Assembly: GCF_001194135.2 (NCBI RefSeq)
Contig: NC_069003.1
Coordinates: 17,191,667 to 17,250,901 of the forward strand
Reading direction: 5' to 3'
DNA length: 59,235 nucleotides
From: Octopus bimaculoides
Taxonomy: Eukaryota
Of this stretch, positions 6,341 through 44,309 are shown one piece after another. Position numbers and translations under genes: made by a program. The stretch's first letter is position 1, and the number at the start of each line of letters is the position of its first letter. Below the pieces are notes generated by a model, which saw only the letters and a program-made list of their open reading frames with translations, searched no databases and was not told the origin of the DNA.

Positions 6341-7650
6341 ATTACATGGAAAAATGCAAGCAAAAGAAATAATATTCTTAAGATTATAAACCTGGAAAAT
6401 TACAGGACAAGTTATTACACTTGGAAAAGTTCAGGATAACTTATTACATCTGGTGAAGTACAGAACAAGAAAAATTTTACTTGAAATATTGCAGCTAAGG
6501 ATAAAATTTCAAATAAAATAGATTTAGAAAATATTAGCTTTTATTAAAACTAAAAATTTTATTACAAGCTATTACTTCTATTTGTTATTACTTGTTACTT
6601 CTATTAAAAATGAAAAAATAACTCAAAATATTTTTTGCACTTTAAAAAAAAATTCAATTTTTAATTATTAATTAATAATTAGAAATTTGAAAATAGGTTA
6701 TAAAAAATAATAGTAGTACATAATTAGTTAGTACGATAAATAGAATAATACAAAAATTAGTTATATATTACAGTAAAATCTACTNNNNNNNNNNNNNNNN
6801 NNNNNNNNNNNNNNNNNNNNNNNNNNNNNNNNNNNNNNNNNNNNNNNNNNNNNNNNNNNNNNNNNNNNNNNNNNNNNNNNNNNNNNNNNNNNNNNNNNNN
6901 NNNNNNNNNNNNNNNNNNNNNNNNNNNNNNNNNNNNNNNNNNNNNNNNNNNNNNNNNNNNNNNNNNNNNNNNNNNNNNNNNNNNNNNNNNNNNNNNNNNN
7001 NNNNNNNNNNNNNNNNNNNNNNNNNNNNNNNNNNNNNNNNNNNNNNNNNNNNNNNNNNNNNNNNNNNNNNNNNNNNNNNNNNNNNNNNNNNNNNNNNNNN
7101 NNNNNNNNNNNNNNNNNNNNNNNNNNNNNNNNNNNNNNNNNNNNNNNNNNNNNNNNNNNNNNNNNNNNNNNNNNNNNNNNNNNNNNNNNNNNNNNNNNNN
7201 NNNNNNNNNNNNNNNNNNNNNNNNNNNNNNNNNNNNNNNNNNNNNNNNNNNNNNNNNNNNNNNNNNNNNNNNNNNNNNNTTCGTGCGGGTGACACGTAAA
7301 AGCACCCACTACACTCTCTGAGTGGTTGGCGTTAGGAAGGGCATCCAGCTGTAGAAACTCTGCCAAATCAGACTGGAGCCTGGTGTTGCCATCCGGTTTC
7401 ACCAGTCCTCAGTCAAATCGTCCAACCCATGCTAGCATGGAAAGCGGACGTTAAACGATGATGATGATGATGATGATGATTCAAATTTTATCCTTAGCTG
7501 CAATATTTTAAGTAAAAATTTTCTTGTTCTGTACTTTACCAGATGTAATAAGTTGTCTTGAATTTTTCCAAGTGTAATAACTTGTCCTGTAATATTCCAG
7601 GTTTATAATCTTAAGAATATTATTTCTCTTGTTCGCATTTTTCCATGTAA
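6341..7650. repeat. Inverted repeat of about 190-bp arms flanking a gap and a SINE
   Basis: About 6341-6532 (ATTACATGGAAAAATGC...GCAGCTAAGGATAAAATTT) is a diverged reverse complement of about 7481-7650. Confidence 0.75.
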
Positions 7651-8509
7651 TCCCTGTTTTTTCCAGGCGATGCTATTATGCTAATCAATAATATGTCAAT
7701 TAGTGGTGTTGTTGATAATTCTTACCTTACCTCAATGGCGCTGGTGACATATATTAAAAGTCCCCTTATAGAACTATATTGTCACCCTCAAATTTGAGAA
7801 ATAAACACTCATAACTTTTTTCTTTTAAAACTTCATTGAGCTCTATCATTTAAGCTTAATTAAAATATAGTTTGTTTTTAAAATAAATAAGTTAATTATA
7901 CTTAAATTCAATTTTTTGCCTTACTTATATATTTTTTTCATGATATTTTACCCTCACAGTTTTTCGATACAAATTTTTGTTGCATGGGAACAAAACTATG
8001 AAATTTTTCATGCTTTCTTCTATCATTGAAGCTAAGATAAATATATTTTGCTTTTAAAATAAAAATGTTATTTAGATCTAAACTTGAATGGTTGCGTTAC
8101 TTACTATCCTACAAATTTTGATGTAAACTTTTTACTACTGGATCAAATCTCAAATTTTCAATGCCAAAATGTAGCAAGGGATCAGTCCTCTTCAAAAATG
8201 TTAACAGTTTTCAATTTGGTTATGAACCGAATTAACGACAAGCTCTGAAAGATGCTGCATGTGAGTAAATTGCAACCTTAAGAATATTATTCAACAACAG
8301 TCATAGTTGAATGATATATATATAGGCACAGGCATGGCTGTTCGGTAAGAAGTTTGCTTTTCAACCACATGGTTCCAGGTTCAGTCCCACTGAGTAAGTG
8401 TCTTCTACTATAGCTTTGGGCCTTGTGAGTGGATTTGTTAGTTGGAAACTGAAAGAAGCCCATCATGTATATATATATCTGTAATATAATATGTGACAAT
8501 AATTCGGTT

Positions 8510-13389: not shown

Positions 13390-14960
13390 ACTCACAAGGC
13401 AATAGAGGACAATAAAACATTCAGACAGATAGATGAAACAAGGGTGGACAGGAAAACCAACAATTAGAGGGACAGGAAAAAAAAGGACGGGTCATTTGTG
13501 GCCTTCTTTCTTCAGTCAAGTTACCAGATGTCCTTAGAGTTTCGGGCAGTTACACTTGAGACTGTTTGATCTGGTTGCCCCCAAAAAAGTTCAAGCTAAG
13601 AGCATTTGATTTTTTGGAAAGAAAGCTAGCAAATGTGTATGGCAACAAAGACAAAAAACGGAGAACATGGCAACAGTTACAAATACAAACAACAAGAATA
13701 TAACAAGAGGTGTCTTTCGACTGAGGACGAATCAAACTGAGCTGATGTGCATGAAGTGAAAGCCTTGAGGCAGGAACATAGGAGATGGACATAAGAGGTG
13801 TTGGTAGTCGGCAGTCAGGCCAAGAAAGAAAAATCATGGCTGGCTACACACCAGTCACGTGGAAGGAGGAGAGAGGGGCAGGGGGCAGCAGGATTGAAGG
13901 ATTAGAAAAAAAATCAGAGACAAAGGGAAAGGTACAGGGGAGATAAACGAGAAGGAAAAGTGGGAGTTAAACAAAGAGAGGGGAAGTGAGAAAAAGGAAA
14001 GAGGAAGAAAGTATGAGGTGGACTAAAAGACAGAGTAAAAGAATCGTACAAAATTTAGATACATACTTTCTATAAGGTGAGCACAAGTGTGTACGTATGC
14101 CGCTATATGTATATATAAATATTTAAAAAATGGAACAAAAATGCAATAGAGGACAGTAAAACATTCAGACAGATAGATGATACAAAGTCAGACAGGAAAA
14201 AAATGGACGGGTCATTCATGGCCTTCTTTGTTCAGTCAAGTTACCAGATGTCCTTATAGTTTCGGGCAGTTATACCTAAGACTGTTCGATCTGGTTGACC
14301 CCAAAAAAGTCTAAGCTAAGAGCTCTTAGCTTAGACTCTTTTCTTTTTCTTGCTCTCCCCCTCTCTCACATTTCTTGGCCCTCTCTTTAACTCCCACTTT
14401 TCCTCCTCGTTTATCTCCCCTGTACCTTTCCCGTTGTCTTTGATTTTTTATTAATCCTTCAATCCTGTTGCCCCCTACTCCTCTCTCCTCCTTCCACGTG
14501 ACCAGTATCCGGCCAGCCATGATCTTTCTTTCTTGGTCTGACAGCCAACACCTCTTATGTCCATCTCCTATGTTCCTGCCTCAAGGCTTTCACTTCATAC
14601 ACGCCAGCTCAATTTGATTTGTCCTCAGTCAAAAAACACCTCTTGTTATATTCTTGTTGTTTGTATTTGTAATTGTGTACCATGTTCTCTATTTTTTGTC
14701 TTTGTTGCCATACACATTTGCTAGCTTTCTTACAAAAAATCTAATGCTCTTAGCTTAGACTTTTTTGGGGGTAACCAGATCAAACAGTCTCAAGTGTAAC
14801 TGCCCGAAACTGTAAGGACATCTGGTAACTTGACTGAAGAAAGAAGGCCACGAATGACCCGTCCTTTTTTTTCCTGTCCCTCTAATTGTTGTTTTTCCTG
14901 TTCGCCTTTGTATCGTCTATCTGTCCGAATGTTTTATTTTCCTCTATTGCGTTTTTGTTC
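13390..14960. mobile_element. Inverted plus partial tandem arrangement of a Penelope-like terminal repeat
   Basis: About 13400-13870 is the reverse complement of about 14420-14950, with a partial direct copy at about 14140-14335. The shared GTTTCGGGCAGTTACAC / CTGAAGA segments are typical of PLE ends. Confidence 0.55.
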
Positions 14961-16700: not shown

Positions 16701-18004
16701 TGTGGCCATCCATACAGAGAGGCACATCTCTTATAGTCCTGCCCCCACTCCCTCTCTCAGTTGAGAGGTCTTTGTCTTGTAGGTGCCAGTTCCACATAAA
16801 AAGCACCCAGTACACGCTGTAAAGTGGTTGGCATTAGAAAGGGCATCCAATGTAGAAACCATGCCAAAACAGACAACTGGAGTCTGGACAGCTCCCCAGC
16901 TGGCCAGCTCCTGTCAAACTGTCCAACCCATGCTGGAATGGAAAACAGACATTAAACAATAATGATGATGATGGTGATGATATATATATATAGCTATATG
17001 AGCATGCCTTTGAGCATGTATTTGTTCCCCACCACTGCTTGTCAACTGCTATTGGTTTCTTCAAATGCTCTGTAACTTACTGGTTCAGCAAAAGGAGACC
17101 AAAAGAATAAGAATCAGGATTAAAAAAAATTGCACTGGGTCAAATTGTTTGACTAAACCCTTCAAGTATGGCTGTAGTCCTATAATTGAAACAAATAAAA
17201 GATTAAGAGATAGGCTATAATTTATATTAGCGGCAGAAATTTGGTTCTAATCACAAGTTCTTCATTCATTACATTCACTTCTACACCCATGCCCAATTTT
17301 GTCACTTTCTCATACACTTTTGAAACCTCTACCCACCCACACTCCTTGTTGTTCTATCCCCACTCACTTCTACTCACCTTGTACTTGAGGGTTCAACCTA
17401 ACACTGCATCACCGCTATTTTTATTATCTATCCAGCTTCACCTTAGTTACTTCCACTCTCCTCAAATGTTAGTAGCACTGTAGTTCCTCTACAGCAAGAA
17501 AGCTGTTCCGTTTTGGCCCTTTCTCTTCTATTTCAACCCCTCATCTTCTAGAGTAAATATTTCAACCTTCCTCTGAGTTCATAGTCTTGCAGGCTGAATG
17601 ACATCTTCACTAGTGCTGGTGGCATGATAAAAAGCATCTAGTACACTCTGGAAATGCATTTAGCTGTAGAAACCATGCTAAAGCAGACACTGAAGTTATT
17701 AGTAGAACTCAATATACATATGTTTCAAAATAAAGTATCAGATGAGTATAGAGTGGTAATAACAAAAAGAAATAACACAGGAAAAACAATAGTTATGTTA
17801 TGAACTTAACCACTGTTTTCCTGTCATCTCTTTTTCTTATATCAATATATATATATAAGCAAAAACATTTGAGTTTTCACATACGAAGTAAGATATCACT
17901 ACTGCTAATATCAGCTGCAGTGAATATTTTTAAATGATAATATTAACAGCAGTAATATAGGCAGTTTAACAGGTCTGATAGCATTATATAGCTATAAAAT
18001 TTAA

Positions 18005-18256: not shown

Positions 18257-18622
18257 TTAACTTGTACACACACACACATGAAGACATAAATATCATCATC
18301 TTTTAAAGTCAGTTTTCTATGTTGACATGAGTTGGAAAGTTTGACAAGATCTAGCAAGGTGGAGGACTGCATTGAATTTTAATGTCTGCTTTGGTATGGT
18401 TTCTAACTGGGTACTCTTCCTAATGCCATTATACAGCATAAACTGGACGCTGTTTTTTTCAACACACCAGTACTAGTGAGGTCACCATGCAATTCACAAG
18501 ATTTATCTCATTGACTGTGACTACAGTAAAGAATGAGGAGGACAACAAATAAGCATAACTGTTAGATGTACTCACCAGAAAAGATTTTGGCTGCTGCATG
18601 GTAGAAGATGATGCAATGGAAG

Positions 18623-20452
18623 TTATTGGGAATAATGACGTAACTTTTCTTTGTACAGTTCAATGTAGGATCTGAGCTCATTATGAACTCCTCTTATAAC
18701 TTTGATGTTGCGTTCACGATTGGGGTCGTTATCAGCAAAGATTTGGAGACCTTCCTGTATAAGTGCCAACCCTGTAGCCAAATGATCAACATTCAACTGA
18801 AGTTGGGTGGAGGCAGCTTCTATATCTTCCTCTTCTTCTTCTGCAGCTCGATCTTGTTCCAACAGCAGCAGCTCCTCATTAGACAAGCTTTCTCTATGGG
18901 ACACCAATAACTCAATCACATCATTTTCTTTGACTTCTTCAAACCCTGCACTATTTGTAAGTGTCACAATGTCCTGCTGAACTTGATATAGACTTTCTAC
19001 TGGTGGAAAATCTGTAAAGTCACGGACACAGTCTGGCCATATGTTTTTCCAAACACTGTTCATTGTTGAAAGTTTTACTTCATTCCATGAGTCAGCTATA
19101 TTATCTACAGCATTCATAATGTTAAACTTTGTCCAATAGTCTCTAACTGTAGTTTTATCCTCACCATCAATGGCTTTTATGAGTTGTTTAAAAATTCTTC
19201 TGTGGTAATATGCTTTGAAGAGAGCTACCACACCTTGATCCATTGGCTGGAGTAAAGAGGCTGTGTTCTTGGGAATAAATTCCACCCTCACGTTATCAGA
19301 AAGATCATTTAAGTTCACAGGGTGGCTTGGTGCATTGTCTAAAAGTAGCAATGCCTTGTTGGAAATATTACGCTTTGCACTGTAGATTTCTATAGCAGGG
19401 CAAAAAAAGTTTGTAAACCAGTCTTGGAAAAGGCTTGTAGTCATCCAAGCCTTCTTATTTGAACGCCATATTACAGGTAGATTAGACTTAGCATAACCCT
19501 TGAAAGCTTTTGGATTTTCAGAGTGATAAACAAGTAGGGGCTTTAATTTCATATTACCAGCAGCATTTCCTCCCACAAGAAGTGTCAGGCGATCTTTAGA
19601 AACTTTAAAGCCTGGTGCTGATTTTTCTTCATTGGAAATAAAAGTCCCAGCAGGCATACGCTTCCAGAAAAGTCCAGTTTCATCAACATTGTACACTTGT
19701 TCTGGTGTGTAGCCTCCTTCAACAATCATTTTCTTGAGTTTCTCAACATAACTAGTATTAGCTACCATATCAGCCTCTGCATTAGCTTCTATATGAACTT
19801 TTGTATCTTCTGTACTGTCTTCTATATGAATTTTTATATTAGTCTCTGTACTATCATCTATATTAACCTCTGTATCAGCCTCTATATTGTCATATATATC
19901 ATCTTCGGTATTTGCCATTGTGTCTTCTGTATTAGTACATATATCAATATTTGTGCCAATACTGTCAGCTCCATTGTTCATTTTTATTTTGTGCAATTTA
20001 AAACGTTTTTTAAACCTTTCAAACCAGCCTTTACTAGCAAGGAAAGGTTTCACAACAGAAGTTGCACCTTCCTTTTCCTGCAAATGTTCATACAAAGTTT
20101 TTGCTTTCGCCTGAATGACCACTGCACTTATTGGTACATTATGTCTAGTCTGTTCATTGATCCACACACTCAGGAGCCGTTCCATCTTCAGCATTACATC
20201 AGATCTATGAAAAAACAATGTCCGGGCAGTTAAAGGAGTAGTTTCTTGAGCAATTTTTCTAATTTTGTCTTTATTGTCACGTATTGTTCCTACTGTAGAT
20301 GCTGCAAGCTTTAACGATTTTGCTATGTGACTTAGTTTTTCTCCTGCATCGAATCTACGTAAAATATCAAGCTTAACGTCTAATGTAATCCCTTTCCGAC
20401 TCCTTTTCACACTACTGCTTTGACTTCCATTTGATGGCCTCTTTCCAGTCAT
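18623..20452 (-). CDS. Tigger/pogo transposase-derived protein (TIGD/CENP-B-like): N-terminal HTH, Tc5-type HTH, DDE_1 domain; 609 aa from the first ATG
   Basis: Uninterrupted 1.83-kb ORF. Motifs ITLDVKLDILRRFDAGEKLSHIAKSL, ASKGWFERFKKR, NVDETGLFWKRMP, KDRLTLLVGGNAAG, LLLLDNAPSH and LQPMDQG. Catalytic Asp codons at 19682-84, 19337-39 and 19238-40, with 32 residues between D2 and D3. The ORF-track start at 20530 is a GTG. Confidence 0.93.
   Translation of the reverse strand: MTGKRPSNGSQSSSVKRSRKGITLDVKLDILRRFDAGEKLSHIAKSLKLAASTVGTIRDNKDKIRKIAQETTPLTARTLFFHRSDVMLKMERLLSVWINEQTRHNVPISAVVIQAKAKTLYEHLQEKEGATSVVKPFLASKGWFERFKKRFKLHKIKMNNGADSIGTNIDICTNTEDTMANTEDDIYDNIEADTEVNIDDSTETNIKIHIEDSTEDTKVHIEANAEADMVANTSYVEKLKKMIVEGGYTPEQVYNVDETGLFWKRMPAGTFISNEEKSAPGFKVSKDRLTLLVGGNAAGNMKLKPLLVYHSENPKAFKGYAKSNLPVIWRSNKKAWMTTSLFQDWFTNFFCPAIEIYSAKRNISNKALLLLDNAPSHPVNLNDLSDNVRVEFIPKNTASLLQPMDQGVVALFKAYYHRRIFKQLIKAIDGEDKTTVRDYWTKFNIMNAVDNIADSWNEVKLSTMNSVWKNIWPDCVRDFTDFPPVESLYQVQQDIVTLTNSAGFEEVKENDVIELLVSHRESLSNEELLLLEQDRAAEEEEEDIEAASTQLQLNVDHLATGLALIQEGLQIFADNDPNRERNIKVIRGVHNELRSYIELYKEKLRHYSQ
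19751..19972 (-). repeat. Degenerate 12-bp (4-aa) tandem expansion inside the transposase ORF
   Basis: Peptide units TNID/TNTE/ANTE/DNIE/ADTE/VNID/DSTE/TNIK/IHIE/DSTE/ANAE replace the short GEAASAD-type linker between the HTH and DDE domains. Confidence 0.75.
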
Positions 20453-22500
20453 CTTGAATAAGCGTAACGTCTTCACTGTACGTTCGTAAAAGTTAAATCC
20501 AACAGCAGCAATGGTAGTCAAGAAATCCACAAGAAATATATATTACTTCTAACAAGAAAAAAGAAATATTTTGACATTTATATTGTGATTTAGGTTATTA
20601 TTAAAATAGTTAGAATTTAGCCGAGTTACCGTGGCGTGAAATTTCGGTTCGTATCCCGAAATTAGTTGTTATAGTTCACAATTACCGTAAGTGCGGAACT
20701 TCCGTAATATGAATTTCCGTAACGCGAGGGATATCTTCGTGTAAACAGATTTTTATATCAAGTATTAAAAACACTCGTGTTTATTATATTTACTCGAATA
20801 TTATTAATTAGAAATTAATTCACCTTCTGAAGCGCTGTTAGGAACATTACATTTCGCGGTTGTAGGTGTGTCGCTTACATCTTTCAAAAAAAAAAAAACG
20901 CTACCAGAATAATTTTTTCCCGTAAATATTGAAAAACGGAAAAAAAAGAGAGAAAAACCTATCTTTAATTATATAAAAATTTTACAAATACCAGTATAAT
21001 ATTCTAAATCACACACACACATATATATATATATATATACGCACAGAGCTTTTTTAATGATATAAATATAATAAAATTTCAATTCTAAATAAAATTATTA
21101 TAACTCTAAAGAAACTACTACAACACAAACCTATTAACTTTTTAAATATAATTTAAATTGTCTTACTTAATTAAATCTTTAAAACTTCTTTATTAATTAC
21201 CATTTACGAAACTACAGCTAAGAAAAAGTAACTAGAACTATCATTAGCGTCAAAATTCAATTTTGTTTGTGAAAAATTTCAGCAAAGGAATCAGATCTCG
21301 CTTCCCCAAGTATCTTAATTCACTGATATACATATATATAAACAAAATATACGCCCACACACCACATATATATATATATATATACACACACACATACCCA
21401 TATCCTGGGACAAGAGGAAGTAAGTTTATTTATCTATTTCGTTATTTATTTTGGTGAAATTTCTCCTCGTTTCATATTTTTCTTTCTGTTGTATGTAATT
21501 GTATGATCTTAGAAGCAAAACTTGGTGGAAATGGAATGGAATCGACATAGGTTGTTATGCACAGGTCGTCGAAGTGATTCTGAATTAAAATGTAAAACCG
21601 AAATGACAATTGTTATGGCCAGAATGGCTCTCTTTTAGGACTCAGGTGAATTTGGGGCTAAACAACAACAACGAGGCATCTTCTATTTGGTCATAGAACT
21701 TGCGAAAAGTTCTATGACGAACGAAAGATTGCCTAGATATGATACAGTGCTAAATGTATAATGACCGAAAGGATTAAAAAAAGATGTAATCACCTCGACT
21801 AGAACGGCTTTGATAAAACAGAACTTCTAGAAACAGCAGCTAAATTTTCTTGATAGGAGCGAGAAGGAATGGAAGTGACAAAGGTTGTTTCCTATTTTAC
21901 TTACAGGGCTTCGAAACGATTCTGAAATACAATATAAACCGAAATAGTTATTGTTATATATGAAAATAAGCGAAAGTAAAGAATAAGTACATCCGGTGTT
22001 TAGGGTTAGGGTTTTTGTTACGCCGAAAACGGCTGGTGTACGTATTCTTTTATCTCCGCCTGAAAATATGGATTTCTTTAAGGACTGAACTGAATTTGGG
22101 GCTTAAAAAAACAAAAAAGACACACAAGATAACTTCTGTTTGGTCACAGAACTTGCTACAAATAGCAGCCCCAGATCTCCTTCATAACACACGAAAGACA
22201 CATTAGGTCGGTGGTTCTCAACATTCTTTCCCCCTTGCCTATGGCTCCCTTTGACTATTATTTTATTCTGGTGGACCCCATAGCCATTCGATATTTAGAA
22301 ACTAGTTTTATAGAAACTCATTTCAGAATGCCTATTTTGTTTTTCACACGTTGACTTGCGTACGTTTGCAATAGCATTCTCCCGGAGAACATGTTTCAGT
22401 GGCCGGAATCCTGTTGAACCGCGTAAAGTGTTAGAGAAAGAAACCTAGCTGTTTTTCCAAAATTTATCTGCTTTTCAACGAATTTTCAAATCGGAAGTGA
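20200..22500. promoter_or_regulatory. CpG-retaining region, candidate divergent promoter for the TIGD-like gene and MAD1L1
   Basis: CpG dinucleotides are visibly much denser here than in flanking CpG-depleted DNA. Palindromic ETS-like CGGAACTTCCG at about 20694-20704; candidate plus-strand donors ACC|GTAAGT (20687) and GAA|GTAAGT (21420). TSS not observed. Confidence 0.5.
20685..20743 (-). repeat. Possible 5' TIR/subterminal remnant of the Tigger element
   Basis: Minus strand TACACGAAGATATCCCTCGCGTTACGGAAATTCATATTACGGAAGTTCCGCACTTACGG resembles Tigger/pogo TA-CAG..CCTCG..TTACG termini, with three TTACGG units. Confidence 0.4.
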
Positions 22501-24913
22501 TCTTTAAGAAAAATCATATGTTTACAAAAGAATTGGCGAGCTGGCAGAATCATTAGCACGTTGGACAAAATGCTTAGCGGTATTTCTCTCTGCTCTTTTA
22601 CGCTTTGGGTTCAGATTCCACCGAGAACAATTTTTCTCAACTTTGCTTTTCAACTTTTCTGGGTCGATAAAATAAATACTTGTTGAGTACTGGGGTCGAT
22701 GTAATTGACTTCCATTTTTTGCCAAAATTTGAAAGAATTATTTTTAATGGTAGAACTCGAAGTAGATAAGATTATAAATAACAGCGTGTAGAGTATTGAG
22801 TTTAAAAACTCTTTAGATTTAAAAGAAGGGGGGGGGAAAGGATGCCAGTAGGAAGAACTAAAGTTAAATTCAAAATTGTCTTGAGTTCAGTCTCACTGTG
22901 TAGCACCTTGGGCAAGTCTCTTTTACTATAACCCTTATGAATGAATTTCGTTGATGGAAACTGGAATAAGCCCATCGTGTTTGTACGTCATCATGTAACG
23001 TCCGTTTTCCAGGCTAACATGGGTTGGACGGTTTGACTGGAGATGACAAGCCAGAGGACTGCATCAGGCTTTACTGTCTTGTTTTGGCATGGTTTTATAG
23101 CTGTTTGCCTTCACTGTTTGACAACTGGTGTTGGTTTGTTCATATGCCCATAACTTAGCAGTTCATCAAAAGAGAACTACAGAATAAGTACCAGGCTTTC
23201 AAAGAATATAGTACTGGGGTCGGTTTGTTTACCTAAACCCTTCAAGGCAATGCCTCAGTATAGCCACAGTCAAGTGACTGAAACGAACAAAAGAGAAACT
23301 ATAGCTGCTAGAAGTTTTCCTTCAGTTGTATAGTATAAAAGAGAGTTACACAGTTTGTTAACCAAACTTTTAACCCTTTTTAGCATGAGGTCCTCCTGTG
23401 TTACTCAGCACATTGGGTGGAAAGCTTCCTCCATTGAGTTTGGTTGGCTGCTTCTCTTGTACATCATCATCATCATCATCATCGTTTAATGTTCGCTTTC
23501 CATGCTAGCATGGGTTGGACGATTTGACTGAGGACTGGTGAAACCAGATGGCTACACTAGGCTCCAATCTGATTTGGCAGAGTTTCTACAGCTAGATGCC
23601 CTTCCTAGAGAGTGTAGTGGGTGCTTTTACATGCCACCGGCATGAGGGCCAGTCAGGCGGTACTGGCAATGGCCACGCTCAAAAAGGTGTTTTTTACGTG
23701 CCACCTGCACAGGAGCCAGTCCATCAGCACTGGCATCAACATCTTAATTCTAAATTATAATTTGTTTTGAAATTTTAATGTTGTCTGTCTTCGAGTCATC
23801 TTGAAATGTCTTCTGCCAAGTGATCTTTGGTCTGCCCCTTTTACACTTGTTGAAAGGCAGTACCTGAGTCATGGCTGGTTTTGAGTGCCATTGATTACCT
23901 AGCTGGAGAATGTAACCAGCTAGGCAGAATTGGTGTTCTGAAGGATGACCTCAGAACGCAGAACCTTTCAGATGAAACGACAAAGTACTGAGATACTGGT
24001 GCCTTGATACTGCAATACTCAAGAATACAGCAGAAGTGTTAAGGCTGCATCTCCTGGTAGAGAGAATTGGCCTGCAAAAGTCCTGTGCCAGTGCCATGTA
24101 AAAAGCACTCATGCCACTGCCATGTGGAAGCATTCATGCAGGTGGCACGTTAAAAGCACACACTGTAAAGTGGTTGGCATTAGGAAGGGTATCCAGCTGT
24201 TGAAACCAAGCCAACTCAGACTGGAACCTGGTGCAGCTCTCCAGCTGACCAGCTCTGGTCAAACCATCCAATCCATGCCAGCAGAGAAAATGGAGATCAA
24301 AAAATGATGATGTGACTTCACGCTTCTCAGAATCTCCTCTTTTGTGACACTGCCACCAGTTCACCCTCAGGATCTTTCTGAGGCACCTTTGAAGGAATAC
24401 ATTTAACCCTTTACAAAACTTTCTCTTCCTTTTCCTTCTACTGTATAAGTATTAAAAAACTAAGATTGAGCTTTGCCTAACCCTTTTGATACCAACCCAT
24501 CTGAGTCAGTCCATTTCTGTATTACAAACTTTCTGTTTTAAAGTGATCTAAATTAGAACCTTCCAAACAAAATTTCGTGTTAATTTATGTTCCTAATACC
24601 AGCTTACTAAATTCTTCATTATTTTCAAAATTAAGTGTATTTCAAAAGAAACTTGGTAAAAGGATTAAGTATTTTATGTTTCTATCAGTCTATATGTTTT
24701 GTAATTCACCTGAGACAGAACCCTGGCTCTATAGCTTATGGTGTTTAAAGTGATCTATATTAAAACCTTCCATCAAAATATCATGTTAATTTATATTCCT
24801 AATTACCAGCTTATTAACCCTTTAGCATTCAAGTATAATGCTTATTTATTCACATTGTTTTGAATTAACCATGCATCATCTCATAGATTTGAGATTTCAG
24901 TATAATTGTTTAT

Positions 24914-25217
24914 TGTTATAATGTGGATCCTCATCCACTTGTATGTTATTGTCGGCACTGTAATATTTTTGTCACTATTATTATGTTGTGGTGGTATTCT
25001 GTGTCTTATTGCTGATAGTTCTGCTGGACAATGACTTTGGAATGTTTACCTTGATGGTAACTCAAACTCGTATGTATCTCATAACTGACACTGACTCAAA
25101 CTGAGAACTCGTGACTCTATTACTACTGACCCAGCTATGACCGACTGACTCTCTGACTTTATAGTGGCTGGTCATATCACTTTGTCATGTGAGAAGGAGT
25201 GTACTATTTTCAATACA
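24914..25217 (-). repeat. 3' LTR
   Basis: Direct repeat of 29790-30119 with substitutions and indels; polypurine tract adjacent at about 25218-25228. Confidence 0.9.
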
Positions 25218-25441
25218 TCTCCCCTTTTAGTTTTATTTTGGTGGTGGGGAAGCAAGTAATTTTATTTTGCTTTATTCATCCCTCCTCTTTTTAGCGGTTT
25301 TTAATTTCTTTTTCTTTTTGGCTTCTCTGTGTTCTTCCTTTTTTTTCCCCACTTGTATGCATGGTTTTAACAACCTGTAATGGTGTTGGTATCTGGAATG
25401 TGTCATACAGCCATTCCATAGGTTCTTCCAATCTGTCTGGT

Positions 25442-28400
25442 TCATTTTGTATGAATCTTGTACTTTATAATTTTTCCTTCTTCCAAGTATTGTTTTCTGT
25501 TTTTATATGACCTCATGTACACCTTATCACCAATTTTGAAAAAATTTGGATTGTCTTTCCTGGTACTTTTTCTTTCCTTGCTAGGTAACAGTTTATCAAA
25601 AACTGATTTCACCTTTCTCACAAACATCAGTTCAGCTGGTGAGCTTCCTGCTGGTGTATTGAGGTTTGGAGTCACTCTGTATAACCTTAGGAATTGCTGC
25701 AGAGTGACTTTGTCTGTGACTTCCTTGTTTGCTTTTCTCAAAGCTCTCTTAAAAGTGTTCACAAAATTCTCTGCCTGTCCATTTGGTCTGCAATGGTAAG
25801 GCGCTATCATTTTATGTTCTACTGTGAACATTTTGCAGAATTTTCTAAATTCACTGCACACAAATTTTCTTCCATTATCAGATACAATCATGTCTGGCAT
25901 TGCCAAATCTTTTTTTTTTCTTTTGTACTGGAGGGGACCAGTCATTTAGATTGGCCCCAGTATGCAACTGGTACTTAATTTATCAACCCTAAAAGGATGA
26001 AAGGTAAAGTCGACCTCGGTGGAATTTGAACTCAGAACATAAAGACAAACAAAATAATGCTAAGCATTTCACTGCCTTAAATGGGATGCTAAATCTTGCG
26101 AATAATTTGTGCAAAAGATTTATTACAATTGAGGCAGTTGGTCTTTTGCACTTAACAATTTTCGGCCCTTTTCTTAAACTGTCAACTACTACTAAGTAGT
26201 AATAACCATTTAACAGACCCGCAAAATCAATATGTAGTCTTGACCATGGACTTTTTAATTCTGGCCTAGGCTCCTATTTTTTAGTAGGCAATTTCACTGC
26301 CAGAGCACATCCTCTGCAGCCCTTTACTACGTTTTCAACTTCCATGTCCATCTTCGGCCAATACACATAACCGCACATGAGTGCTTTCATCTTTGTGATC
26401 CCCGGATGTCCAATATGGAATTCTTTCAACATTCATTTTTGTAGAGTTTTGGGTATCACTACCCTTTGGCCATTCATCAGTACGCCGTTGCATGTTGAAT
26501 ATATGTTTACATCTTGTTTTTTCTTTCCGAACCTTTTCTTGTTTTCTTTCACTGACCACGGAGTTTTTTTTGTTTTGTTAATGAACTTTTCTTTTGATGT
26601 GTGTCGCTTTATCTCCTCCAGAGTTAATGCTAACTCTCATACAATGTTCCACATTATATGTTTTATTTTCCCTTCAGCTCTTAGAGCTGCTATTACCACA
26701 TCCTCGAATGGTTCACCATTTTTGGGTATTAACCTGGATAGGCCGTCAGCATGTCCTAGCTTTATTTGAAGGTAAATATTCCACTGGGTAGTCATAGTTT
26801 AGTAGTATGGTGCCAAAACATTGCAACTTGTTTGCTGTATGTACTGGGATTCTTTCTTGGATCCATAAATCTTTAGCAATGGGCAATAGTCTGTTTGTAG
26901 TCTAAACCGTCTACCATGTATAAACCTGTGGAACTTTGATAATTGCTAATGCCTCTTTTTCATTTTGACAATAGTGTCCTTGATGCGTGAGCTATGGCCT
27001 TTTGGCTGCCATCTTCATATTTATGTAGGAGTACAGTACCTGCCCCATACTCACTAGCATTTGTTGCCAGTATCATTTCCAACGTGTGTAAGTGACAAGT
27101 CTGAAGTTAACATGCTTTTTAGTTCCTCAAATGCCTTCTGGCATTTTTCTTACCAAAACCATTTGGCATCCTTTTTTAACAGCTTGTTTAGTGGAACCCT
27201 TGTGTTGTGTATGTTCAGGATATATACTTGATAGTAGTTTACCAAGCCTAAGAATGCTTGTGACAATTTGATGTTCATTGGGGGAGGCATATTTCGTATT
27301 GCTGTTGCCCTTGATGAGTCTGGCCTTTGTCCCCTTTCGTCAATTACTTGACCCAAATATTTGATTTTTTTTTTCATCAAAAATTCACACTTTTCCTCTG
27401 TTAGTCTAAACCTATATTCATTTATTTTTCCAAATACTTTTCTANNNNNNNNNNNNNNNNNNNNNNNNNNNNNNNNNNNNNNNNNNNNNNNNNNNNNNNN
27501 NNNNNNNNNNNNNNNNNNNNNNNNNNNNNNNNNNNNNGAAGTGTTGCTCCACTGTCTCACTCTTTATCAAAATATCACTGAGATAAGTGATAGCAAAGTC
27601 ACAATCATTTAACAGTGCGTCCATCACTTGTTGGAATATGGCAGGTGCCACTTTTACTCCAAAAAGAAGCTGCTTGAATTTATACTATCCGCAGTGTATA
27701 TTGATTGTTAAAAGGTGTGCACAATCTTCTATCTGTATCTAGGGCTCTGAGAAGTCTAACTTTGAGAAAATTTTTCTTCCATTTAGTTTTGAGAACACTT
27801 CTTCTGGGCTTGGTAATGGATAGTTGTGTTCGAGTAAACAGTCAATTAATCCAGTTGAAAAGTTCGCACACACTTTTAGTTTATTTTTTTTCACTTTACA
27901 TAAACTGTTGGAGCTGCCCAGTCTGGATGGTTGACTTTTTCAATTGTAGCTAGACTTTCTAGTCAGTCTAGCTCTTTATTGACCTGGTGTTGCCTTTTCT
28001 TTCACTATGATCCTTGCTTTTGTTTTAGTGCAACAACGTAATCCTTTCGAAAAAAACATCTGGAAACAATTTTTTAATTTTTTGTCTTGGTTCAACTTCA
28101 TTTGAACTTTTAACTGTGCCGACTACATTTTCACAGAGAACACTGATGAGGGTATCCCGAATAGGTTTAGTGATTTTTTTCAACACATAAATTGATTGTC
28201 CTCATTACATTGCAAATACATTCGCTGATGAAATATAATTTATTTCCTGTAACACCATATGCTACTTTATTTGATTTAAATAATTTTGGCTTACCAATTT
28301 GTAGCCATGTTTTTTCATTTATGATAGTGATGTCACTACCTGTGTCTAATTGCTTTTCAGCACTAGTGGTTTTGATTCTCACCTTGATGAATTTTCTGTT

Positions 28401-29229
28401 CATTGTACAAACTTTTTTCTCTAATGACAAACTATTTTTTCTTGTTTGGTCCAATTTTTCATCATCTTAGTTCTGCAGTGCCATACATGGGTTTATCTCC
28501 TGATATATATTGTGTTTTTCGTGAAATACTTTATCCGTCTTCCAACATTTTTGCACTGGTTTTATCTGTAAACAATCTCTGCATTGGATTTCTTCAGTGT
28601 TGTGCCTTACTTTTAATATCATATCACACTTTTCTGACAGTTTCTAGAGAGTAATATCCTGGTTCATTTCCAGCTTTGTGAAAATTTTTATTCTGACTTC
28701 TGCATCCTTTTTAGCAGTAAGTTCCTGAGCAAAAATCAGGCACTTGAACGAGTCTGGAGTTAGTTTATCCTGTTTAAATCTCTCGCACTCTCTGTTCACT
28801 CTACTGGCATATGTGGTAAAGTCTTCATCATTGCTTTTCTCAGTGTTCAAACACTTCCAATGTGTGTTGAACAATGATGTTTTTTCACTAAACATCCTAC
28901 ATAAAATGTCAATTGTGTCTGTGAAATTTTTTAGAAACTTTTTTAAGCAATATAAGGTTACAGTATTTCTCATGCTCTATCATCGCTAGTTTCCTCAGAA
29001 TTAGATGTTTCATTTTGTCTGTCCAGTCTTGGTATTCTTTTACGCAAATTTGTTCAAATCTTTGGTAATAAACCTTGAAAGTGACTTCTTCTAGACTGTA
29101 TGTAAATTCATTTATTGAAATGGCTACATGGTCTTGCGAAAACATATTTTCTGATTTTGTTGCCAACTTCATTAGTTGTAGTATTTGTTGCTGTAACATG
29201 TTATTGTTGTTGCTGTTTTTGAAACTCAA
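25442..29229 (-). pseudogene. Gypsy gag-pol remnants (gag about 28500-29229; protease about 28170-28450; RT about 27150-27900; RNase H about 26750-27100; integrase about 25442-26350)
   Basis: QLDTGSDITII (protease), APAIFQQVMD..TYLSDILI (YLDD mutated), IKYLGQVID, IVSDNGRKF..APYHCRPNGQAENFVNTFKRAL (integrase); fragmented by stops and frameshifts. Confidence 0.9.
25930..26072 (+). mobile_element. SINE fragment inserted in the Gypsy integrase region
   Basis: AAGGATGAAAGGTAAAGTCGACCTCGGTGGAATTTGAACTCAGAAC matches SINE pieces at about 22600-22700, 37320-37400 and 37720-37790; it interrupts the pol reading frame. Confidence 0.65.
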
Positions 29230-29282
29230 CTAAACCCCTCTAACAAGTTTTCCATAATTCTATGGATTTTTCATAAAATGTA

Positions 29283-29651
29283 CAGGGTGATTCAAAAGTC
29301 TCCATACATAGGAAAACATTATATTTTTTATAAGAAACAGTTTATAAGATCCCGTAGATCCCCTGATCTGACTCTTCTTGATTTCTATCTTTGGGGGCAT
29401 TTGGAAGGCATGGTGTATCGCGAAAAGATAAAAGACAAATCATTTGAAGGAACGCATCACTAATTCATTTGCACACGTATCACCAGATGTGCTATTAAGA
29501 GTTCACAATGAGTGGGGTAAACGTATTGCAATGTGTATCAAAACAATGGTAACCATATAGAGCCTGTTAAATAAAAAAAGAAACTGTTCTTATAAACTGT
29601 CTTATAAAAAAATAAATTGTTCCTATGTATAGTGACTTTTGAATCACCCTG
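29283..29651 (+). mobile_element. Internally deleted Tc1/mariner element nested in the Gypsy leader
   Basis: TA|CAGGGTGATTCAAAAGTC..ATACATAGG ... CCTATGTAT..GACTTTTGAATCACCCTG|TA. The internal peptide RSPDLTLLDFYLWGHLEGMVY matches the SPDLxPxDFxLW motif. Confidence 0.88.
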
Positions 29652-29789
29652 TATATAACAAAAATGTTTGTTACTCTTAAGGCGAGTTTTTAATTTCTCC
29701 ATGTGAATTTTTTTAAAAATTCCTCCGTGTGAAAATTTTTTAAAATTCTTAATGTCATCTGTGTGAATTGTTTATATATTCATTGCCAC

Positions 29790-30119
29790 TGTTATAATGT
29801 GGATTCTTGTTGACTTCTATGTTGACATCGGCACTGTAATATTCTTGTTATCACTATTACGTTGTGGCGGTATTCCATGTCTTATTATCTTTAACTCATC
29901 AATCATGCTATCGCTGATAGCCCCACAAGACAATGATTTTGTAACGTCTATCTTGATGGTAATTCAAACCATCACGTAGCTGACACTGACTCTAACTGAG
30001 AACTTGTACAATGACTCTACTACTACTGACCCTGCTACAATGACGGACTGTCTGACTTTATAGTGGCTAGTCATACCACTTTGTCACATGGGAAGGAGTG
30101 TACCATTTTCACTACAACA
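29790..30119 (-). repeat. 5' LTR
   Basis: Direct repeat of 24914-25217; PBS-like sequence at about 29781-29788. Confidence 0.9.
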
Positions 30120-30371
30120 TTTATTTATTAGTATGACACTGTAGGGTAGGTGTGAAAAGCTTGATCTGGCCAGTTTGAACAAAAATCAGAACATTTCGGC
30201 CAGATATGGTCAGTTTGAATACTAAAGGGTTAATGACTGTTATTTTACTAAATTCTTTATTATTTTCAAAATTAATTGAAACAAAACTGTATCTCAACAG
30301 AAATATAACAAAAAGGTTAATAATTCCTTAAACTTTTAAAACCCTCTATTTTTTCAGAAGATTTACTCACC

Positions 30372-30561
30372 ATGTATTGTACCTCAGAACCAACACATGT
30401 TTTCCGAATGAAGAGAGACTTTGCTGCATTTGTTGGCAGTAACCCATGGGACAGTAGTAACAAGTCACCAAGAATATCAAATGACCTGAAATGCATGCTG
30501 GACTTTGACCAGAGTTTGTCTGAAAACACCTCTAATCCACAACTATTATTAGATTCTTCTG
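30372..30561 (+). CDS. MAD1L1: MAD1L1 coding exon 1 (acceptor at 30357/30358; ATG at 30372)
   Basis: TTTTTTCAG|AAGATTTACTCACC-ATG; MYCTSEPTHVFRMKRDFAAFV resembles the MAD1 N-terminus; donor TCTG|GTCAGT is phase 1 and matches the next exon. Confidence 0.75.
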
Positions 30562-31829
30562 GTCAGTATCAATCACCAAGAAATCTTTCTTGGTCATCTT
30601 CATTATGTTGTTTTATATATANNNNNNNNNNNNNNNNNNNNNNNNNNNNNNNNNNNNNNNNNNNNNNNNNNNNNNNNNNNNNNNNNNNNNNNNNNNNNNN
30701 NNNNNNNNNNNNNNNNNNNNNTATATATATGTATATATATTTTGATCACCTTGATGTTCTGTTTAGGTTTTTTGTCTTGTTTCTTTTTCTAGGATAAGGC
30801 AGTAAAGCTGTTTCATACATTAAGTTCTAATTCAATCATGGGCAGCCTGCAGGATTTTAAGAATGACACACCTAATGAAAAATTACCTTGAATTTTTTTA
30901 GTTGTGTGGCCTGCCTGATGGTGAGCCACATCTCATGGGGCCCACTTTTCGGAAAAGGTTAACCATGCCTGGTCTAAATGTTTGATCCATGTACCTCAGT
31001 GTATCACAGTCATTAGACTGCAGCCATGCTGGGGCACTGCCTTGAAAATTTTTTAGTCAAATGTATTGACCCCAGTACTTATTTTTTGCTGAACTGCTAA
31101 GTGATCATCATCATCATTTAACGTCTGTTGTTCATGCTGGCATGGGTTGGACGGTTTGACTGGGCTGGCATGCTGTAAGGGTGTGCCAGGCTCAGGGACG
31201 TAAGCACCAACACCGGTTGTCAAGTGGTGGTGGAGGACAAACATAGGCACACACATACACACACATAAATATGGGCTTCTTCCAGTTTCCAGCTACCAAA
31301 TCCATTCACAGGCTATTGTAGAAGAAACTTGCCCAAGGTGCCATGCAATGGAACTGAACCCTGTGGTTGGGAAGCAAGCTTCCTACCACACAGCCACACC
31401 TGCATCTACTTTGTTGATATTGTTGAAGAATTCATCTCACTGATGTTCTCCTCTTCTTACAGTAAGCAGAGGAGGGCTTCAGGTCTAAGAAAGTGTCCAA
31501 CTACCCCCAGAACATCTCGATGATGTGAATTGTCATCATTGTTTTAACGTCCAATTTTCCATGAGTGCATGGGTCAAGTGAAATTCATTGAGGCAGATTT
31601 TCTGTGGCTGAATGCCCTTCCTGTGCCCAACACACACCTGTTTCTAAATCAGGCAATATTTTCCCCCGTGGCCAGACACTTTCATTGGAAACAAAAAGAC
31701 ATCACTTGCATGATGGTGACACTCTCTTACGACTATCATATGATGTCAAGGCAAGGAGACAGTAACACACACTCACACATACACATATAATATCTAGTTC
31801 CAGTTCGTCACCAATGGCCATGACTCGCT

Positions 31830-34631: not shown

Positions 34632-34789
34632 TTAAAGAAGTTGATTCTTCAGTGCGTGAAGCAAAATATCTGAAATGGAAGAGTGATGTTGCAAAATACG
34701 AGGCTCAGGTTCAAGCCCTTGAAGTGAAACTGAAACAGTCTTTGATTGAGACCACAAAACAGATCAACTTGGAAAAGCAAGAGAAAGAG
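34632..34789 (+). CDS. MAD1L1: MAD1L1 coding exon 2 (coiled coil)
   Basis: TATTTCAG|TT AAA..GAG|GTATTT; VKEVDSSVREAKYLKWKSDVAKYEAQVQALEVKLKQSLIETTKQINLEKQEKE; phase 1 to 0. Confidence 0.88.
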
Positions 34790-35756: not shown

Positions 35757-35927
35757 CAATGCCAGGAGAAGGCCGAGGAACTACGGACACAGTTAAAGCT
35801 GCTCTATGAGAAAGAGAAGCATCTTCAAGGAGAAAATGCTGAAATGGCTCACAAACTAAACAAAATGGATTCAGAGATTGTTGCTTTGAAGAAAGCAGCA
35901 GTGGCTTCAGACTGCCAGAAACAACAG
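35757..35927 (+). CDS. MAD1L1: MAD1L1 coding exon 3
   Basis: CATTGCAG|CAA..CAG|GTAATG; QCQEKAEELRTQLKLLYEKEKHLQGENAEM..DCQKQQ; phase 0 to 0. Confidence 0.88.
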
Positions 35928-38311: not shown

Positions 38312-38436
38312 AGATTCCTGGAACATGACCAAGAGATACGCTTCCACAAGGAAAAGCTGTTCGATGTACAGACAAAGTTACAGACTAGTCAGAATGAGTT
38401 GTCTGAGATGAAGACTCAACTATCATCTACAAAAAA
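38312..38436 (+). CDS. MAD1L1: MAD1L1 coding exon 4
   Basis: TTCTCCCAG|AGA..AA|GTAAGT; RFLEHDQEIRFHKEKLFDVQTKLQTSQNELSEMKTQLSSTK; phase 0 to 2. Confidence 0.87.
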
Positions 38437-42620: not shown

Positions 42621-44309
42621 TAGATATTTCTGTTTGAATTATAAGAAAATGGTTAAGTCTAACCACTCCTACCCATGTAGGCCATGTTGGGATTTGAAAT
42701 CTAAACAAAGAACTTCAATAAATACTGCAAAGCATCTGCTATGTCACACTAATGTTTCCATCAGTCCACTACCTTAGACTAGTATCTTAGCAACTGTGGA
42801 AGGATGAACGTGTGTGAGTATCTGTGTGTGTATCAAAATTGTACTTATATTTCACAAATGACTTAATTTAGATTTACATGATCAAAATTTCATGTTAAAA
42901 TCTCTGGTTCTCATCCAATCAGCAAAGTTAAACAATATTGAGCCTAGTTAGTCTTTAAGTGGGTGTTTGGGAAACTTAGGTGTCGGCATGGCTGTGTGGT
43001 TAAGAAATTTGATTTGCAACCATGTCATTTTGGATTCAGCCTCACAGTGTGACACCCCAGGCAATTGTCCTCTTATGTCTTCTATGACAACTCTGAGCTG
43101 ACCAAAGTCTTGTGTGTGAATTTAGTTGATGAAATTCAAAATGAAGGCGGTTATATATGTGTCTGTATATATGTGTGCGTGTGTATGTGTGATCATCATC
43201 ATCATTTTAATTTCCACTTTTCCATGTTCACATGATTTTATGGAATTTTGTTGAGGCAGATTTTCTACAATAAGATGCCTTTCCTGTCATCAACCCTCAT
43301 CTGTTTTCAAGTAAGATATTTCCTTGTGTTCAGGTTTTCACAGAAGATTGGAAATAAAGGACACCACTTGCATGATGGAGACGTTCATTTAAACCAGTGG
43401 TTCTCAAAGTGGTCAGTGCTGTCCTCCTGGGATTGGTGGAAAGATTCAGTGGGGGTGAGGGGCATTGCAGAAAAGTGGGGTGATAATGGGATGACCAAAA
43501 GTGGGTGATGGCTGTAAAAACAACAAAATGAGTTAATTAGGTTTAGTTCATCATCATCATCATCATTGTCGTTTAACATCTGCTTTCCATGCTAGCATGG
43601 GTTGGGCGATTTGACTGAGGACTGGTGGACCAGGAGGCGACACCAGGCTCCAATCTGATTTGGCAGAGTTTCTACAGCTGGATGCCCTTCCTAACGCCAA
43701 CCACTCCGAGAGTGTAGTGGGTGCTTTTCCGTGCCACCGGCATGAGGGCCAGTCAGGCAGTACTGGCGATGGACATATTTGAAATGGCGTATTTTACGTG
43801 TCACCTGCACAGAATGTCTTTTCACGTGCCAGGGAGGAAATGCTGGTAACGATCAACGGCCACACTTGAAATGGTGTATTTTACGTGTCACCTGCACAGG
43901 GGCCAATCCATCGACACTGGCAATGATCTTGCTCGAATGTCTTTTCATGTGCCACTGGCGCAAGTGCCAGGAAGGTGACGTTGGTAGCGATTACGCAGGT
44001 CTTCGCAAGCCGAGTTTAGTGTTCCTACAAATTTAGTTCGATTTCGATGCCTCACCATGTCTTCGCAAGCGGAGTTTAGTGTCCAATGAAGGAATGTTAC
44101 GTGTAAGTGGGCTGGCTACATCCCTGGCAGATGCCTTGGATTTTGGTCTCAATTGGCTTGCCGGGGTCTTCTCACGCACAGTATATTTCCAAAGGTCACG
44201 GTCACAAGTCATTGCCTCGGTGAGGCCTAATGTTCGGAGGTCATGCTTCACCACCTCATCCCAGGTCTTCCTAGGCCTGCCTCTTCCACGGGTTCCCACT
44301 GCTCGGTGG

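Follow-up and report, generated by a model that had tools for sequence, protein, structure and literature searches.

A probable domesticated Tigger transposase gene head-to-head with MAD1 in Octopus bimaculoides and other octopods

The stretch of Octopus bimaculoides DNA analysed here is 59,235 nt long (NC_069003.1, positions 17,191,667 to 17,250,901) and is called the window, in whose coordinates all positions below are given. It carries a Tigger-derived open reading frame (ORF), LOC106882409, on the minus strand and a MAD1 gene on the plus strand, arranged head-to-head with a CpG-rich stretch between them. Here we report that the Tigger-derived gene is most readily understood as a domesticated, immobile transposase that has been kept as an octopod host gene, likely as a DNA-binding protein, a reading to which we give a probability of about 0.8. 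The domestication appears to predate the split between Octopus and Argonauta, because the gene keeps its place beside MAD1, has a low ratio of nonsynonymous to synonymous substitution rates (dN/dS), has a synonymous divergence (dS) equal to that of MAD1, and has lost or mutated the terminal inverted repeats (TIRs) of the parent transposon.

The listed ORF (18623..20530, minus strand) is 635 aa long and begins with GTG. In Octopus sinensis the 26 additional codons ahead of the ATG at 20452 contain a stop, and this ATG was therefore taken as the start of a single-exon coding sequence (CDS) of 609 codons. The 609-aa product has exactly one entry in the protein collection, on chromosome CM046623.1 of assembly GCA_001194135.2, and a look-up of the 635-aa GTG-started version returned no record. 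The gene is not new to the literature: a 2023 catalogue of 788 putative transposon-derived transcription factors lists LOC106882409 as 'Ob_82409, CENPB', and its product, XP_014788567.1, is one of seven pogo-derived CENPB-family factors given there for O. bimaculoides (PMC10027918). The Ka/Ks values of that catalogue compare family members, not orthologues, and it contains no synteny, TIR analysis or mention of MAD1. Our literature search found no paper joining a domesticated Tigger transposase with Octopus.

The predicted protein contains three Pfam domains, CENP-B_N (PF04218, E 4.8e-7, 29.8 bits against a cut-off of 21.2), HTH_Tnp_Tc5 (PF03221, E 1.6e-13) and DDE_1 (PF03184, E 4.9e-48), all above their curated cut-offs. 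The catalytic triad consists of D257 (NVDETG), D372 (LLLDNAP) and D405 (QPMDQG); 32 residues separate the last two, and this DD32D spacing falls inside the DD29-36D of Tigger elements (Gao et al. 2020, PMC7386202). An AlphaFold model (mean predicted local distance difference test score 75.6) is confident for the helix-turn-helix (HTH) domains, the RNase-H-like core and the C-terminal helices, and predicts linker residues 160-218 to be disordered. Foldseek matches of the model were Mos1, the CENP-B DNA-binding domain (DBD; 1hlv_A), Sleeping Beauty and Metnase; in a sequence search against solved structures the CENP-B DBD (1HLV) was the only match, at E 6e-4. Part of the acidic linker is encoded by a 33/24-nt tandem repeat (19767-19888), so the octopod-specific linker probably grew by local duplication.

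The O. sinensis orthologue, XP_029649971.1, is also 609 aa long and 97% identical; the sequence on either side of it is collinear with the window, and a MAD gene lies head-to-head with it, the CDS starts being 5.0 kb apart. In Argonauta hians a 714-aa protein (P0040) is encoded head-to-head with a MAD gene at a distance of 3.9 kb between CDS starts. A third octopod, represented by three Logan contigs, has an intact ORF with collinear flanks and about 89% nucleotide identity to the window. The distance between the start codons of the Tigger-derived gene and MAD1 ranges from 3.9 to 9.9 kb across species. Fragments of the downstream neighbour of the gene in Argonauta, a Glyco_transf_11 gene, gave no match when used as queries against the window and the O. 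sinensis locus.

Pairwise dN/dS was calculated by the Nei-Gojobori method. It is 0.126 between O. bimaculoides and O. sinensis (dS 0.116), 0.165 between O. bimaculoides and the third octopod (dS 0.246) and 0.137 between O. sinensis and the third octopod (dS 0.296), and in all three Octopus pairs nonsynonymous changes are far below the neutral expectation (p 2e-14 to 1e-27). The DNA-binding, DDE core and C-terminal regions each have a dN/dS of about 0.07-0.15, and only the acidic linker is relaxed, at 0.3-0.7. The first exons of MAD1 have a dS of 0.108 between O. bimaculoides and O. sinensis, against 0.116 for the Tigger-derived gene. Because the two agree, the Tigger copy has been resident since before these species split, and its changes accumulated in place under host-level selection. 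As a rough estimate, a neutral sequence of 1.8 kb would be expected to have acquired tens of stop codons over a tree length of about 0.33 substitutions per site.

The ends of the parent transposon are largely gone. On the 5' side a remnant with a degenerate TIR is still attached to the gene (Table 1); its tip reads AAGATATCC, where the lobster counterpart described below reads CAGGCATCC. On the 3' side, homology to the lobster element stops 56 nt past the stop codon. No convincing inverted repeat flanking the ORF was found in the window, and a search of the window for the lobster-type TIR returned no match at up to 3 mismatches. Two inverted repeats that do surround the ORF (I7 and I24) were considered as TIRs and rejected, being AT-rich, 73-76% complementary and at chance level. 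A mobile Tigger transposon needs two TIRs (and makes a TA target duplication); here no 3' TIR is found in the window and the 5' tip has been altered, and the octopus copy is therefore immobile. Motifs of the form TTACGGAA/ACTTCCG upstream of the ATG were considered as ETS-type promoter sites, but they align with subterminal repeats of the lobster element and hence originate from the transposon end; in the window, TTACGGAA is confined to the 5' remnant. Within the same remnant lies a near-palindrome, AATTTCGGGATACGAACCGAAATT (20640-20665, minus strand), conserved in three Octopus species. A donor-like consensus, CTG|GTGAGT, is likewise conserved in the three species at 18570-18575 (minus strand), 48 nt past the stop codon and where the lobster homology ends; it could be the donor of a 3' UTR (untranslated region) intron.

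A preliminary description of this DNA, made from its letters and a list of ORFs, had reported an unbroken 609-codon Tigger ORF with DD32D, a CpG-poor body, a CpG-rich 5' end and no recognisable 3' TIR, pointing away from MAD1 across a CpG-rich stretch, and these features all stand on closer analysis. Of the four outcomes that it had named as refuting a domestication co-transcribed with MAD1, three were tested here and none of these was borne out: both O. sinensis and Argonauta hians have an orthologue next to MAD1, identically placed and oriented, dN/dS between orthologues is 0.13-0.17 and not near 1, and a conserved splice acceptor argues against a MAD1 transcription start near 30.3 kb. The fourth, a multitude of near-identical TIR-flanked copies, was examined in the protein collection and the window (see below). 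Its statement that all other coding transposon remnants here are broken is likewise upheld: the retroelement of the spacer is split over three frames, and the other long ORFs of the window gave no significant family match.

Outside the octopods, the gene's closest relatives are Tigger copies from the lobster Homarus americanus. One of these, at lobster locus L008, has TIRs (ACAGGCATCC...) on both sides and TTACGG-type subterminal motifs at both ends. The octopus ORF is 82% identical to it in nucleotides over 1095 bp and about 73% in amino acids, with a dS of 0.59 and a transversion distance at fourfold degenerate sites of 0.16. Between window positions 18567-20737 and L008 positions 4175-8271 the divergence is far below that of vertical descent from a common ancestor of molluscs and crustaceans, which points to horizontal transfer of the Tigger family among marine animals. 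Sawfish and ray Tigger copies are 60-64% identical in amino acids. The best database matches of the octopus protein bear the names TIGD1 or CENPBD1; in the tree, octopods and Homarus group together (99.7% bootstrap) apart from Equus and koala TIGD1, and the octopus gene is no orthologue of vertebrate TIGD1. On these relationships the gene arose separately from vertebrate TIGD1 and from CENP-B, out of a Tigger1-like family that includes the TIR-flanked lobster copies. No swarm of near-identical copies is seen in the protein collection, where the 90%-identity clusters of this protein contain 1 and 3 sequences; there are no further Octopus proteins among the 120 best matches, and the window holds no second copy. 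A 592-aa relative (P0009) with 54% identity over its full length lies on a 5.8-kb contig (Logan SRR8690377), where it adjoins intron-less Amnionless-like and galactosyltransferase ORFs and not MAD1.

Orthology between the Octopus and Argonauta genes is borne by several features besides position. The two form a clade with 90% neighbour-joining (NJ) bootstrap, sister to the lobster Tigger copies and apart from mammalian TIGD1, and 11 residues are exclusive to the four octopod sequences among all those aligned. In both proteins a large insertion separates the second HTH from the core at the identical site, and both end at the identical alignment column. Their 5' remnants share substitutions and are truncated at about the same point. 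As a control, MAD1 was compared between Octopus and Argonauta and found to be equally saturated (proportion of synonymous differences, pS, 0.85). Since MAD1 is an undisputed orthologue, the length of the Argonauta branch reflects that lineage as a whole, and this control settles most of the orthology question. In the A. hians genome paper the Octopus-Argonauta split is constrained only by a fossil minimum of about 29 million years (Ma), and the Vampyromorpha-Octopoda split is at least 162 Ma old (PMC12682272). In the Argonauta protein (locus L006, 10001-12145) the third catalytic D is replaced by N (QPVNQG), and the linker has 157 aa against 75 in Octopus; constraint may have been relaxed or altered in the Argonauta lineage.

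Table 1. Features of the window around the Tigger-derived gene and the first coding exons of MAD1.
Feature	Position	Strand	Remarks
3' flank homologous to lobster element	18567..18622	minus	homology ends at 18567; no 3' TIR beyond
Tigger-derived gene, CDS	18623..20452	minus	single exon, 609 codons + TAA; LOC106882409 / XP_014788567.1, Octopus bimaculoides
C-terminal helical region, aa 471-609	18626..19042	minus	conserved across Tigger1-like family; dN/dS 0.09-0.15
RNase-H-like DDE core, aa ~250-470	19043..19705	minus	Pfam, AlphaFold model, Foldseek; dN/dS 0.08-0.15
Catalytic codon D405	19238-19240	minus	
Catalytic codon D372	19337-19339	minus	
Catalytic codon D257	19682-19684	minus	
Linker, aa 161-255	19688..19972	minus	D+E 24, K+R 5; acidic core is an octopod-only insertion; dN/dS 0.3-0.7
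DNA-binding region (CENP-B_N + HTH_Tnp_Tc5), aa 16-156	19985..20407	minus	Pfam, 1HLV match (E 6e-4), Foldseek 1hlv_A; dN/dS 0.07-0.13
Transposon 5'-end remnant	20453..20737	minus	5' UTR, subterminal TTACGG motifs, degenerate TIR; alignment to lobster element
Host-derived 5' UTR	20738..20860	minus	mRNA model start 408 nt upstream of ATG, 123 nt outside remnant
CpG-rich host spacer common to O. sinensis	20738..22343	.	CpG o/e about 0.8-2.0; candidate promoter region for both genes
Broken LTR retroelement	24914..30116	minus	gag-like, RT and integrase pieces in three frames; absent from O. sinensis locus; holds an assembly gap
MAD1 first coding exon	30358..30561	plus	ATG 30372; conserved acceptor before, donor G|GTCAGT after
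MAD1 coding exon	34632..34789	plus	conserved with O. sinensis and Argonauta
MAD1 coding exon	35757..35927	plus	conserved with Argonauta
MAD1 coding exon	38312..38436	plus	approximate ends; conserved with Argonauta (tblastx)

The observed/expected CpG ratio (o/e) is 0.20-0.25 over 18501-20000, which covers most of the gene body, and 0.8-2.0 over 20001-23000, the value for the whole window being 0.30. The same pattern is found in O. sinensis and Argonauta, where the ratio is at least about 1 just upstream of the gene and low in its body. The CpG-rich stretch is presumably unmethylated, judging from the CpG depletion elsewhere. The supplement of PMC10027918 gives a RefSeq mRNA model of LOC106882409 that begins ACCGCGAAATG... 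and maps to 20860 on the minus strand, which would place the start of transcription in CpG-rich host DNA. Conservation in the spacer peaks in the 100-nt bin around this modelled transcription start site (TSS), 20838-20937, which is 98% identical between O. bimaculoides and O. sinensis. The CpG-rich spacer also contains an internal duplication of about 300 bp (21521-21819 and 21844-22206), both parts of which align to a single O. sinensis segment (L1rc 13444-13789).

Precomputed annotation assigns PF05557:MAD to the gene with a CDS start at 30372, and does so in three species. By tblastn, human MAD1 matched no exon of the window, because its N-terminal coiled coil is too divergent; Pfam did not detect PF05557 in the four N-terminal MAD1 exons, and the first exon as a query had no match in the protein collection. 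Because tblastn and Pfam were negative on these exons, the identity of MAD1 rests on the precomputed full-protein annotation. A polypyrimidine tract and CAG precede the first coding exon in all three species (acceptor 30357/30358), and Argonauta homology of the exon begins at this acceptor. At least one non-coding exon of MAD1 must therefore lie further upstream, and the gene's TSS is not at 30.3 kb, the placement that would have told against the shared promoter proposed in the preliminary description. The two Octopus species share only the spacer segment 20738-22343 and about 130 nt before the MAD1 acceptor, so that MAD1 exon 1, if conserved, would lie within about 1.5 kb of the TSS of the Tigger-derived gene. 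A search of the spacer for conserved donors did not place exon 1; one candidate donor at 21646, present in both Octopus species, was rejected as evidence because it has no counterpart similarity in Argonauta. The head-to-head orientation and common CpG-rich interval of a bidirectional gene pair are found in all three species, and a bidirectional promoter shared with MAD1 is plausible on this arrangement.

Between Octopus and Argonauta, the spacer contains one long, highly significant non-coding match, and this is the 5' transposon remnant (E 7e-12; about 77% identity in a 47-nt core). A second match (21092-21227) is much weaker, AT-rich and probably of low complexity. That the remnant is the sole long significant match suggests that it has been in long-term use as a regulatory or binding site.

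The preliminary description had seen no other gene between the pair, which is correct for host genes, but the spacer is not empty: it carries repeats related to short interspersed elements (SINE-like) and a broken 5.2-kb long terminal repeat (LTR) retroelement. The LTRs, at about 24914-25217 and 29790-30116, are 80-88% identical, which looks old for an insertion that is absent in O. sinensis. An assembly gap of 93 Ns (27445-27537) lies in the reverse transcriptase (RT) of this element and touches neither gene, affecting only the estimate of the distance between them. The RT frame before the gap (...YLSDILIKSETVEQHF) and the frame after it (RKVFGKINEYRFRLTEEKCEF...) are offset by one base with a few motif residues missing, and the 93 Ns are therefore uninformative about continuity or frame; the listed ORF 27150..27560 was rejected as an artefact of these Ns. 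A second gap (30622-30721) begins 60 nt past the donor of the first MAD1 coding exon, and since O. sinensis has about 800 nt there, its 100 Ns probably understate the missing intron. In place of the LTR element the O. sinensis spacer holds a GC-rich RT fragment of a long interspersed element (LINE; L001, about 5445-6533). The SINE-like family, about 180-250 bp long, has more than 10 copies in the window, including 3752-3940, 7283-7480, 16793-16983, 23464-23720, 43547-43813, 51135-51404 and 58995-59233, and occurs in the O. sinensis and Argonauta loci as well.

From these features we propose the following history. A Tigger1-like transposon of the pogo superfamily would have inserted by the MAD1 promoter, pointing away from MAD1, in the common ancestor of Octopus and Argonauta. 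With its 3' end and the 5' TIR tip gone, the copy became unable to move further, while its transposase frame was kept as a host gene, transcribed from the CpG-rich region between the genes with a start in host DNA. Selection maintains the two HTH DNA-binding domains, the RNase-H-like core and the C-terminal helical region, and the octopod lineage added the acidic, disordered linker. The protein most likely binds DNA sequence-specifically, at TTACGG-rich sites resembling Tigger ends, which may include the remnant upstream of the gene's own start codon. The remaining parts of the protein could recruit partners, as in the TIGD/JRK/POGZ group, CENP-B and fission-yeast Abp1/Cbh, and catalysis is probably dispensable. 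Of this account, the orthology, the selection, the immobility and the place of the transcript model are shown, and the DNA binding with its target sites, any regulation in common with MAD1 and the dispensability of catalysis are inferred. The preliminary description's lineage-specific domestication is strongly supported as a domestication by synteny, dN/dS and TIR loss, but the event is older than a narrowly lineage-specific one.

Several observations weigh against this account. The three catalytic aspartates are under purifying selection in Octopus, unlike what a purely DNA-binding role would lead one to expect. Synonymous sites are saturated between the Octopus and Argonauta genes, with a transversion distance of 0.86, and the lobster element is closer (dS 0.59, transversion distance 0.16). 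Support for joining Octopus and Argonauta is moderate in quartets, about 10-11 against 6-8 for the lobster alternative, and the similarity of their linkers is not beyond that expected from composition (p 0.08). The Argonauta branch is about 3.7 times as long as the Octopus branch, and GC content at third codon positions is 0.43 in Argonauta against 0.31. The transcript evidence consists of one RefSeq model printed in a supplement. Among Octopus species the 5' remnant diverges about as fast as synonymous sites do, its constraint being visible only at the distance of Argonauta.

These points bear on four other explanations. That the open frame reflects recent activity of a young or autonomous Tigger copy, as its intact ORF with a full DDD triad and the closely related TIR-flanked lobster element might suggest, is practically untenable and is contradicted here: the gene is orthologous in three or four species at dS up to 0.30 and beyond with dN/dS of about 0.15, it lacks a 3' TIR and has a mutated 5' tip, its clusters hold 1 and 3 sequences, and by rough estimate tens of stops would be expected in the frame at neutrality. 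Separate acquisition, by two insertions at one place or by a younger Tigger overwriting the Octopus copy, would make the gene younger in Octopus and would account for its much greater closeness to the lobster transposon than to Argonauta, for the modest quartet lead and for the non-significant linker similarity. We hold it to be very improbable, as both genes have the identical neighbour, orientation and a similar distance to it, the same large insertion site, stop position and 11 exclusive residues, 90% NJ bootstrap and a 5' remnant with common substitutions truncated at about the same point; MAD1 is just as saturated, and a second insertion within a few kb of a 1.5-3 Gb genome would be very unlikely a priori. 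A third explanation takes the Octopus protein to be a working nuclease or recombinase kept for cutting or joining DNA. The triad (D257, D372, D405) is complete in three Octopus species, the DDE core is constrained and modelled with high confidence, and a transposon end is retained beside the gene; yet the third aspartate is N in the Argonauta orthologue and is also lost in many TIGD1-annotated relatives, the core is conserved in vertebrate pogo-derived genes without the full triad as well (PMC7386202), and the locus offers no second end for excision, all of which make this unlikely.

The remaining explanation leaves the domestication untouched and concerns MAD1, the link to which is conserved and so far only positional. 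The two genes may be mere neighbours in an unrearranged locus, with separate promoters and unrelated regulation and function, a reading we take seriously at somewhat under even odds. MAD1 exon 1 was not located, the spacer tolerates large species-specific insertions (the LTR element in O. bimaculoides, the LINE fragment in O. sinensis), the distance between start codons varies from 3.9 to 9.9 kb, and beyond the remnant only the weak AT-rich block at 21092-21227 aligns between Octopus and Argonauta. On the other hand, the head-to-head order has been kept in three genomes across saturated synonymous divergence, the CpG-rich stretch sits between both genes in all three species, the conserved acceptor places the MAD1 TSS upstream, towards the Tigger-derived gene, and just about 1.6 kb of spacer, adjoining the Tigger TSS, is common to the two Octopus species.

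As a domesticated transposase, the gene is a well-supported molluscan case of a kind of event that is itself already well known: in mammals, fission yeast and insects, transposases of the pogo/Tigger group have been recruited time and again as DNA-binding proteins of the host. The locus is unusually readable, with a TIR-flanked parent family in another marine animal, a 5' end that is still attached and an insertion that would date from before the Octopus-Argonauta split. It illustrates a possible route of capture: insertion of an element next to a CpG-rich promoter, loss of the element's ends, and transcription from host DNA. For cephalopods it provides a lineage-restricted candidate regulator whose binding sites, TTACGG-rich Tigger ends, can be guessed. 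A centromere-related role, raised as speculation in the preliminary description, finds no support here, the protein being neither an orthologue of CENP-B nor one with a detected dimerisation domain. Two more far-reaching possibilities, both long shots, are that the Octopus protein catalyses reactions on genomic TTACGG sites resembling Tigger ends, or that it is a MAD1-coupled factor of cephalopod chromosome segregation associated with centromeres; the latter, if true, would add one more independent case of a pogo transposase recruited in a 'CENP-B-like' manner.

Among known systems, the vertebrate Tigger-derived genes (TIGD2-7, JRK, JRKL and CENPBD1/TIGD1-like) have the same CENP-B_N + HTH_Tnp_Tc5 + DDE_1 plan as the octopus gene, and like it have a single coding exon and have lost their TIRs; their Ka/Ks values of 0.05-0.2 (Gao et al. 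2020, PMC7386202) compare with 0.13-0.17 here. The octopod gene differs in its independent origin, seen in its grouping with the lobster copies, in the full DD32D of Octopus where several vertebrate members have lost the triad (PMC7386202), and in its acidic linker between DBD and core and retained 5' TIR remnant. Conservation of the core is also reported for vertebrate pogo-derived genes that lack a full triad (Gao et al. 2020, PMC7386202). Mammalian CENP-B is likewise pogo-derived, with two N-terminal HTH domains (1HLV), an acidic region and an inactive or unneeded transposase core. Its acidic stretch lies elsewhere, however, the similarity of the DBDs is weak (E 6e-4), and the tree places the octopus protein, which is no CENP-B orthologue, with Tigger1-like sequences; a Pfam scan (E<=0.01) reported no CENP-B dimerisation domain in it.

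Recurrent capture of pogo transposases as DNA-binding host proteins is documented by Abp1/Cbh1/Cbh2 in fission yeast, CAG in Drosophila and cases in Lepidoptera (Mateo & Gonzalez 2014, PMC4231638). These differ from the octopus gene in source element and lineage, and their known functions are at the centromere or heterochromatin and in retrotransposon silencing. The marks of domestication used in that work are an intact ORF, low dN/dS, conserved synteny and absence of TIRs (PMC4231638); the octopus gene has an intact ORF, conserved synteny and low dN/dS, and its TIRs have been lost. A further comparison is with the lobster Tigger element at L008, which has a homologous ORF, a 5' UTR with TTACGG subterminal motifs and a TIR. 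The lobster element possesses both TIRs and no acidic linker, whereas the octopus copy occupies a fixed, orthologous position and evolves under purifying selection at the level of the host.

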